Below, piece after piece: positions 33,721-34,881 of a stretch of 64,000 bases of DNA. The translations under genes and the position numbers were made by a program. Below the pieces are notes generated by a model. The model was not told where the DNA came from, made no database searches, and worked only from the letters and a program-made list of their open reading frames with translations. Source of the stretch: Convolutriloba macropyga. Lineage: Eukaryota. The stretch is taken from positions 11,780,001 through 11,844,000 of the forward strand of contig NC_134473.1 of assembly GCF_964194025.1 (NCBI RefSeq), in the 5' to 3' direction. Positions within the stretch are counted from its first letter, which is position 1; each line of letters starts with the position of its first letter.

Positions 33721-34504
33721 CGTCAAGATTTTTGTTCCGACCATATGACGTCACAACCACTTCAAATCTGCTTTTTATTCATTCTTTCATAAAATTTCAA
33801 TTGAAGAGCGTGCGTGACGTCATTTTTCGCTCTTATTGGAACGAGTTTTTTGTTAATTTGCGTGATTAATTTTTTGGTCACACTTGACTTCTCTCACTCT
33901 GAAAATGACTTCCTCACTTTAAAATTGACTTTTATTTACTTTTAATCAAAGAGACAAGGTCAAATGGGTGTTTGTAACTCTAATTGAAGGGTATTTGAGA
34001 GCAACTAATAGAGGCAGAAAAACCTTATACAGATTTTCAATCAAAATACAACATATTAGCCTTCAATGAAAAGATGAATTTTTTTGGTCTGTTTTTTTTA
34101 CTGTTTTTTTGAGACTGCAGATCTACGAAGCTATTACGGCTATTTTCTGGCAATCTGCCAGTCACGTTTTTTTATATTGATAAATGTAGAAAATAATAAT
34201 TTAAGCCGACAATTTTCCCTTCAAACACTTCCTTTGAAATTACACAAAGAAAAATCATTGAAACAGGGTTCTCTTCCCTGCATTAGGTTGAGAGACCAAC
34301 TTCGAATGAGCTTATCGGCTTGTAGCAAATAGGCATGGGTTGCCGTTGATAATTGCAATTGAACCAGTTGCAGTTTTCCATCAAAAAATTTAGGCAAACA
34401 ATAATTTTGCATAATTTTTCTATTGAAAAAGAAATGTTGAACAGCACCGTCATATACGCAAAAAAATATATAACAATTATGAGTTCATTCTTAGCTGTAG
34501 TTAG

Positions 34505-34881
34505 AATGGAGCCTGCCGCTAAGACTGCACAAACACCGTGATCGCCTGCTGAGAAGAATTTCTCGGGATAATTTAGACGATGCTCAATTTGAAGCAATAG
34601 AGTGTGAATTCGAAGACGTCATGGCAAATGCCAGCGATTGCGAACAACGCATCTCTAATTTGGACAAAAAAGCGCTGAAAACTGCAATAAGAGATATCAT
34701 AATGCGGATAATAAAGATTGAAAAGGCGATTGAGGATCGCGAGGGGTGGATGTACTTGGCGGAGGATCCGAAAGAGGCGAAGGAGTTCTCAGAATTGGTG
34801 AGAAGATATGCATGTTCGATGCCAGTGCCGACTGCAGCCGATAAGCCCCCTCTGCTGCCTCCATATTATGATACAATTTGA
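34505..34881 (+). CDS. Orphan coding exon B, copy 1 (5' end uncertain; C-terminal KPPLLPPY)
   Basis: Frame is open from 34501; candidate acceptor TTAG|AA TGG (phase 1). About 50% aa identity to 52341-52688, extending upstream of the ATG at 34621 (RDNL..AQF..EC). Confidence 0.78.

Follow-up and report, generated by a model that had tools for sequence, protein, structure and literature searches.

Probable terminal exons of a tandem gene in Convolutriloba macropyga, and complementarity between the ends of the intron that precedes them

Introners of Micromonas and other algae and the non-canonical introns of Fritillaria borealis tolerate starts other than GT, and their ends form inverted repeats (PMC11282704); the arrival of a 5' GC or GT with a transposon-derived intron element has been illustrated in a review (PMC11282704). 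The nonconventional introns of euglenids are without GT/AG at one or both ends, and they carry terminal motifs that can pair and so draw the two ends to each other (PMC11170887). The intron described here also has complementary ends. It lies in a stretch of 64,000 nucleotides (nt) of Convolutriloba macropyga, hereafter the window (contig NC_134473.1, positions 11,780,001 to 11,844,000), which holds two diverged tandem units, A1+B1 and A2+B2. Each consists of a gene, A, followed by an open reading frame (ORF), B, and the B1 and B2 proteins are 46-50% identical. An earlier note on this DNA had found no usable start codon in B and had listed several ways in which B could be translated. We conclude, with a probability of about 0.85, that B1 and B2 are exon 4, the terminal coding exon, of two tandem copies of a four-exon gene A (e1-e2-e3-e4). 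Translation would begin at the ordinary ATG of exon 1, and the B frame would be reached through a phase-2 intron running from AG/G[C/T] to TAAG/N (here and below a slash within a sequence marks an exon-intron border). As the frame would be entered in this way, B needs no start codon of its own, no recoding and no alternative promoter.

Proteins that contain both parts

A profile of B1 and B2 was searched against 1.84 billion protein representatives and gave four matches only: P0001, P0002, P0003 and P0004. In three of them the B domain forms the C-terminal part of a longer protein, namely residues 231-346 of P0002 (346 amino acids, aa), 226-327 of P0003 (330 aa) and 178-262 of P0004 (264 aa). 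By tblastn, P0002 is collinear in unit 1 with e2, e3 and then B, with no residues missing, and in unit 2 from e1 through B; exon 1 of A1 was picked up by the family profile. P0003 and P0004 match e3 and B in both units, and P0003 additionally matches e2 of A2. Since these homologues are collinear across e2/e3 and B, B is read as exon 4 of gene A. P0003 and P0004 come from contigs of 1257 and 909 nt of the Joint Genome Institute (JGI), where each is an uninterrupted, intron-free ORF with the e3-like and B-like parts in one continuous frame. The JGI contig of P0003 opens (L002:1-75) with about three tandem copies of a unit of about 24 nt (GCTACTAGTTGTTGAGGTAGCTA), an artefact of the assembly or else a repeated leader.

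P0002 is the product of NCBI gene LOC142340770 of C. macropyga, on chromosome 6 (OZ077304.1, assembly GCA_964194025.3), and represents a third paralogue, A3, with its B part, B3. The four exons of its locus, L001 (10001-10301, 17613-17845, 19456-19613 and 28049-28397), translate to exactly P0002, and therefore the NCBI model uses the donor and the acceptor homologous to those proposed here. L001 and the window have repeat families in common at 84-94% identity, yet they are different DNA. An alignment of five proteins of the family is unbroken over the e3/e4 junction, at which the residues read ..KTLS-R-LHKHRDRLL in A1, ..HKIK-S-LHREQEML in A2 and ..NNLQ-R-LYKEQDILL in P0002. A word search with B2 alone returned nothing from the protein collection, which is to be expected of a fragment of a longer protein, and the same search with P0002 returned only P0002 itself.

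Polymorphism in B1 was also considered. Four sequencing runs match the window, all of DNA, and they yielded heterozygous single-nucleotide polymorphisms (SNPs) and repeat depths. The second haplotype of B1 differs by 10 SNPs in 296 nt (window 34549-34844). Six of these 10 heterozygous SNPs in A1 exon 4 are synonymous, where a fraction of 0.21 would be expected (P=0.009). B1 has its first in-frame ATG at 34621, and 5' of it four of five SNPs are synonymous; this bias indicates that the stretch before the ATG is translated in the B frame. The amino acid changes in the second haplotype include C>S (34603), A>S (34672), C>Y (34814) and K>M (34844, within the ADKPPLLPPY tail). The GC content of the window is about 35% and the DNA is that of an animal; its composition and SNP density are consistent with the values of the C. 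macropyga genome note, a GC of 35.5% and a heterozygosity of 3.65% (PMC13650328).

These observations bear on the possibility that B is transcribed independently, from a promoter of its own, and is translated from ATG 52359 in B2 and from a near-cognate CTG or from ATG 34621 in B1. This reading, which answers to the upstream-ORF or +1-shift and near-cognate options of the earlier note, we regard as highly improbable. ATG 52359 is indeed in frame in B2, TATA-like strings lie upstream (34467 and 52231), and a 110-aa product of B1, P0001, is present in the protein collection. P0001 corresponds to B1 of the other haplotype, with an initial M written for CTG/TTG; it is a mechanical, prokaryote-style ORF call on a DNA contig and carries no weight. 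TATA-like strings are common in DNA of 35% GC. ATG 52359 is not conserved: at the aligned position B1 has CGC (Arg) and B3 has ATT (Ile), and in B2 the codon is an internal Met. No in-frame start is conserved in B, the first codon after the AG of the acceptor being CTG, TTG and CTG in the three paralogues, and both the homology with the e3-containing proteins and the synonymous-biased polymorphism reach upstream past every ATG up to that AG.

Concerning the protein itself, the AlphaFold model of P0002 is disordered over residues 1-115 and forms an all-helical domain over residues 120-330 (predicted local distance difference test 80-97), in which helix 218-245 crosses the e3/e4 junction (residue 231) uninterrupted. 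In the family alignment the disordered N-terminus carries a conserved RRRNS motif, the helical domain keeps W..Y..EC..W, LHY, DHW..RM.DE and GWMY, and a C-terminal PPLLPPY is found in the three Convolutriloba copies only. No significant Pfam match was obtained for B1, B2, any A exon or P0002-P0004, a sequence search of the PDB gave no match, and a Foldseek comparison of the P0002 model with the PDB gave generic coiled-coil rows only (E>0.1). At most, we suggest that the protein is a helical bundle or a coiled coil that may have a kinase site and a WW-binding tail.

Gene models of the two units and the start of the B frame

The proposed exons and the acceptors of intron 3 are as follows.

16417..16720, + strand: A1 exon 1, from ATG 16417, with the phase-1 donor G/GTTAAG; matches P0002 residues 1-100 (profile)
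23359..23588, + strand: A1 exon 2, with the acceptor TTTAG/AT and the phase-0 donor CAG/GTTATA
27193..27350, + strand: A1 exon 3, with the acceptor TTCAG/TG and the phase-2 donor GAG/GCTCCA, GC and not GT
34522..34523, + strand: putative acceptor AG of A1 intron 3, GCTAAG/A, placed by frame continuity and by junction residues that match P0002
34524..34881, + strand: A1 exon 4 (B1), probable terminal coding exon, stop TGA 34879-34881
37310..37601, + strand: A2 exon 1, with the phase-1 donor G/GTTATA
43056..43207, + strand: A2 exon 2, with the acceptor ATTTAG/GT, placed from the frame alone and of lower confidence, and the donor CAG/GTTACA
47184..47341, + strand: A2 exon 3, with the phase-2 donor AAAG/GTTTCA
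52338..52339, + strand: putative acceptor AG of A2 intron 3, TTAATTAAG/T
52340..52688, + strand: A2 exon 4 (B2), probable terminal coding exon, stop TGA 52686-52688

Joined in this way, the A1 exons give a coding sequence of 1050 nt (349 aa) and the A2 exons one of 951 nt (316 aa), each with its sole stop at the end. The intron phases are 1, 0 and 2 in both genes, all acceptors are AG and all donors are GT or GC. Exon 4 lies 5-7 kb past exon 3 in the two tandem genes, and the predicted splices are 27350^34524 in A1 and 47341^52340 in A2. A weak profile match at 46922-47140 (E 0.018) was considered as an extra exon of A2 and was rejected as noise, being out of order and falling in a Glu/Arg-rich part of the profile. 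The five GT donors of A1 and A2 (16721, 23589, 37602, 43208 and 47342) read GTTAAG, GTTATA, GTTATA, GTTACA and GTTTCA; all of them carry T at +3, which is unusual for animal introns. Donors of introns 1 and 2 of the third paralogue are GTTAAA and GTAAAA, respectively. Just past the stop of B2 (52716-52900), in the presumed 3' untranslated region, a C10 run gives way to a long, imperfect tract of (TG)n/(GTGTGC)n, which has no counterpart at B1.

The features listed in the earlier note are all present where it had placed them. B1 has an in-frame TAG at 34498-34500, and a further in-frame TAG stands at 34492. A motif, TTAGAATGGA(G/A)CCT, hereafter the island, is common to both units (TTAGAATGGAGCCT at 34501-34514 and TTAGAATGGAACCT at 52311-52324) and contains the out-of-frame ATGs 34506 and 52316. 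CTG 34525 and TTG 52341 are aligned, both with A at -3, and the exon 1 donors 16720/16721 and 37601/37602 are of phase 1. To these points we add an in-frame TAA of B2 (52332) between the island and the ORF, the in-frame ATG 52359, and a 6-nt indel between B1 and B2 that separates the island from the coding homology.

The gene models change the meaning of most of these features. Homology upstream of the first B1 ATG is confirmed, and at the protein level it begins at 34524/52340, that is 32 codons before 34621 and not about 38. Entry into the B frame by splicing or recoding, as the earlier note had concluded, is upheld for splicing and not for recoding: the e3 donors (27350 and 47341) would be joined to the TAAG/ acceptors at 34523 and 52339, 19-25 nt 3' of TTAG/AA, and not to TTAG/ at 34504 and 52314. 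An unseen upstream exon, one of the options put forward, comes closest, with the difference that the exon is the known exon 3 of A, which had been taken as terminal. The conserved ATG, suggested as an upstream ORF or as the site of a +1 shift, would be intronic, and the peptides that follow it (MEPAAKTAQTP and stop, MEPLRL... and stop, MERPI and stop) are unlike beyond ME[PR]. The near-cognate starts CTG and TTG are then a Leu codon, the first complete one in exon 4, and the A at -3 belongs to the acceptor AG.

The earlier note had also proposed that B is an alternative terminal exon joined to exon 1 of A at TTAG/AA, so that one promoter would give e1-e2-e3 or e1-B. This we hold to be extremely improbable. 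The phases fit in unit 1, where the frame is open for 125 codons, and the pyrimidine context of TTAG is better than that of TAAG, notably in B2. In unit 2 the same join runs into a stop (TAA 52332) after 6 codons, and it does so after 19 out-of-frame codons in the third paralogue, in which the frame of the island relative to the ORF is different. Moreover, in all three homologous proteins e2/e3-like sequence sits between the e1-like and the B-like parts. A spliced-leader acceptor is not needed either if B follows e3 in the mRNA; Rfam and tRNA scans of the window gave no matches, although for Rfam an empty result says little about spliced-leader RNA.

The exon 1 start context (16414-16426 and 37307-37319), AAAATGGAAC[A/C], resembles the island sequence AGAATGGA[G/A]CC (34503-34513 and 52313-52323), and this likeness is why the island looked like a start (MEP..). 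The start context of A2 and the island of B2 have AATGGAACC in common. The resemblance as a whole is probably coincidental.

Several points weigh against the joined models. The A1 and A2 four-exon models are predictions from genomic DNA and protein homology, the NCBI model of the third paralogue may be purely predicted, and the word search found no annotated protein with B1 or B2 in the protein collection. The A1 donor AG/GCTCCA is without the compensating consensus usual for GC-AG introns, and a GT donor at 27389/27390, 39 nt past it, is likewise of phase 2; its use would add 13 codons (RLHSLKFTLLILN) before exon 4, with no counterpart in the third paralogue. The acceptor of intron 3 is without a pyrimidine tract, and as a 3' site the TTAG that precedes it seems the better one. 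The GC at donor 27351 and its poor downstream consensus could also be read as signs that unit 1 is a decaying copy, in which a change of the donor from GT to GC uncoupled B1 from A1. We consider this very improbable, as an identical GC donor is present in the third paralogue, an annotated gene, each of the four A1 exons has an open frame and the polymorphism of exon 4 leans synonymous. For B the outcome of the joined models is thus a correction: no recoding, no non-AUG start and no two proteins from one promoter, and in the annotation of this tandem family B belongs joined to A.

Complementarity between the ends of intron 3

In the joined models the island falls within intron 3. With at most one mismatch, GTTAGAATGGARC occurs at two sites in the window, both homologous, against 0.19 expected, and a third occurrence is found at the homologous site of the third paralogue (L001:28024). 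Its frame relative to the B ORF differs in that paralogue, and therefore the island is not coding. Only two parts of intron 3 can be aligned among the three paralogues: the first ~13 nt (G[C/T]T[C/T]CACTC..) and the island, GTTAGAATGGA[G/A]C. These two parts are complementary: in reverse complement, GTTAGAATGGARC matches the first ~12 nt of intron 3. The intron starts as AG/GCTCCACTC.. in A1 (27351-27352) and A3 (L001:19614-19615), and as AG/GTTTCACTC.. in A2 (47342). The stem-forming part of the island ends 9-13 nt 5' of the acceptor AG, within intron 3. The arms of the proposed stem in the window are:

27349..27360, + strand: proposed stem 5' arm of A1, exon positions -2,-1 plus intron +1..+10, AGGCTCCACTCT
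34500..34514, + strand: proposed stem 3' arm (island) of A1, GTTAGAATGGAGCCT, which holds TTAG/ and the out-of-frame ATG 34506
47338..47353, + strand: proposed stem 5' arm of A2, AAAG/GTTTCACTCCAA
52310..52326, + strand: proposed stem 3' arm (island) of A2, GTTAGAATGGAACCTTT

The pairing common to all three paralogues joins intron positions +1..+6 to island positions 12..7, and includes +8 and +9 as well; position +7 is a conserved C.A mismatch in all three. Further pairs are found at +10 in A1 and at +11 and +12 in A2 and A3, and the terminal bases of exon 3 also pair in A1 (2) and A2 (4). At +4 the pair is C:G or U:G. At donor position +2 the pair is C:G in A1 and A3, which have the GC donor, and U:A in A2, which has the GT donor. 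This change is compensatory: the island has one substitution only, from G to A in B2, and it lies opposite the donor +2 change from C to U. The contiguous helices measure 8, 10 and 6 bp in A1, A2 and A3 (shuffle p 0.0075, 0.003 and 0.136), and introns 1 and 2 of the same genes, taken as controls in this contiguous-helix test, gave p>0.13. The test was used in place of RNAduplex energies, which over segments of 35 nt x 55 nt did not separate cognate from non-cognate arm pairs.

Whether this complementarity is used by the cell is, in our estimate, an even question: the chance that the pairing has been selected for and acts in splicing is about as great as the chance that it has not. The splice sites of intron 3 are weak. 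In none of the three paralogues is the donor followed by the strong consensus that GC donors usually show, and AG/GCTCCA or AG/GTTTCA would be expected to form only 3-4 bp with the standard 5' end of U1. In the mechanism that we propose, the ends of intron 3 would pair in the pre-mRNA over 6-10 contiguous bp, with more pairs after the conserved C.A mismatch. The helix may thereby bring a very weak 5' splice site together with a tract-less 3' splice site across the whole intron (about 5-9 kb among the paralogues), and may help or regulate its removal. Two considerations temper this proposal. The stem is based on three related sequences with one fully compensatory change, and a helix over a 5' splice site is normally expected to inhibit U1 binding.

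Other explanations of the island were weighed. A branch site or a protein-binding splicing element, with a merely coincidental complementarity to the 5' end of the intron, seems unlikely to us. The A of GTTAG stands 20-26 nt before the acceptor, as is normal for a branch; splicing would then pass over the nearby AGs, with TAAG as the first one that can be used. GTTAG agrees with yUnAy only at U and A, however, and the 13 conserved nt exceed what a branch site needs; moreover, the sole substitution of the island falls exactly opposite the donor +2 change. Somewhat less likely still is a use of TTAG/AA as a real alternative 3' site of intron 3, joined from exon 3 and leading to a shifted frame and short tails without the B domain. 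The island would be conserved for this use, which may coexist with the removal of intron 3 at TAAG. The AG of this site is invariant in the three paralogues and preceded by T-rich sequence, and all three shifted frames end quickly (..R-MEPAAKTAQTP and stop, ..R-MEPLRL..PK and stop, ..R-MERPI and stop). These tails are unlike beyond R-M-E, the conservation runs 9 nt 3' of the AG as nucleotides and not as codons, and such a site leaves the base-for-base match of the island to the 5' end of the intron unexplained.

Three further candidates were rejected. A tiny intron within the island region would require a GT...AG of plausible size, and there is none. A branch site on the minus strand, where the island reads TTCTAAC, would have neither a conserved acceptor nor an ORF after it. 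U12-type introns are marked by [A/G]TATCCTT at the 5' end and by TCCTTAAC as the branch site, 10-15 nt before the 3' end; the 5' ends here are GCTCCACT / GTTTCACT, and no TCCTTAAC is present 5' of the acceptor.

In terms of the end-pairing proposal, the motif that misled the earlier note is the 3' arm of a putative intron-closing helix, pairing with a very weak GC/GT donor. We view the conserved motif as a new example, of moderate interest, of end pairing in an intron, possibly a structure-assisted intron type in an animal. More tentatively, and with the balance of our judgement against it, intron 3 could represent a class of animal intron new to the literature, in which a 5' end, +2 included, that is paired about 10 nt before the 3' AG replaces recognition by U1/U2AF. 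If so, an end-pairing mechanism would work over about 5-9 kb and would have been kept by selection across old paralogues, and the GT and GC versions of one intron would be tied by a compensatory change in the partner arm. Our literature search found no paper on unusual or end-pairing introns in acoels. Poly(A) RNA sequencing of the species exists (specimen txConMacr14, BioSample SAMEA8576722, BioProject PRJEB75559; PMC13650328).

Intron 3 and the region 3' of exon 4 hold very high-copy short repeats (window 32600-34200, also 49260-49680; in L001, 22488-22924, 27061-27303 and 28905-30300). Their summed contig word depth is 10^5 to 4x10^6, versus about 30 in the flanking unique DNA, and they show many internal deletion joints, a pattern like that of miniature inverted-repeat transposable elements. 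Elsewhere in the window, the coding region of a BEL/Pao-type long terminal repeat retrotransposon lies at 596-6335 on the + strand, broken into several ORFs, with the domains DUF1759, aspartyl protease, Peptidase_A17, integrase zinc-binding domain and DUF5641. A 175-bp satellite array of at least 33 copies (about 82% matches) occupies 58084-63999 and continues past the end of the window; it accounts for the strong GC and AT skew there.

Comparison with known systems

LOC142340770 is a paralogue at another place, separate from the genes of the window. It belongs to the same family and has the same four exons with phase-1/0/2 introns, the GC donor AG/GCTCCACTCC, the island GTTAGAATGGAGC and a TAAG/ acceptor; over the C-terminal 115 aa its identity to B2 is 66%.

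With the GC-AG introns of the U2 type found in animals, intron 3 has in common the GC at +1,+2, the AG at the 3' end and the AG with which the preceding exon ends. A typical GC donor makes up for its C with a near-perfect AG/GCAAGT, whereas intron 3 of A1 has AG/GCTCCA, which would offer about 3 bp to the standard U1 5' end.

The likeness to introners lies in the inverted-repeat arms at the ends of intron 3. Introners are short, numerous and recent, and form repeat families with target-site duplications; in contrast, intron 3 measures about 5-9 kb, is common to three old paralogues (48-66% identity in the B exon) and has kept only arms of 12-16 nt. By inspection its flanks show no convincing target-site duplication, only AAG (in A2, AATTAA..G) being common to them, and the motif of the stem arms has no other site in the 64-kb window. 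Its borders are G[C/T]-AG, versus AG-AC or AG-AT in the introns compared.

The introns of euglenids differ in that they belong to protists, often have variable borders and are probably removed by another route, possibly without the spliceosome. Compared with them, intron 3 has kept its 3' AG and the G at +1, and in one of the paralogues it begins with a normal GT.

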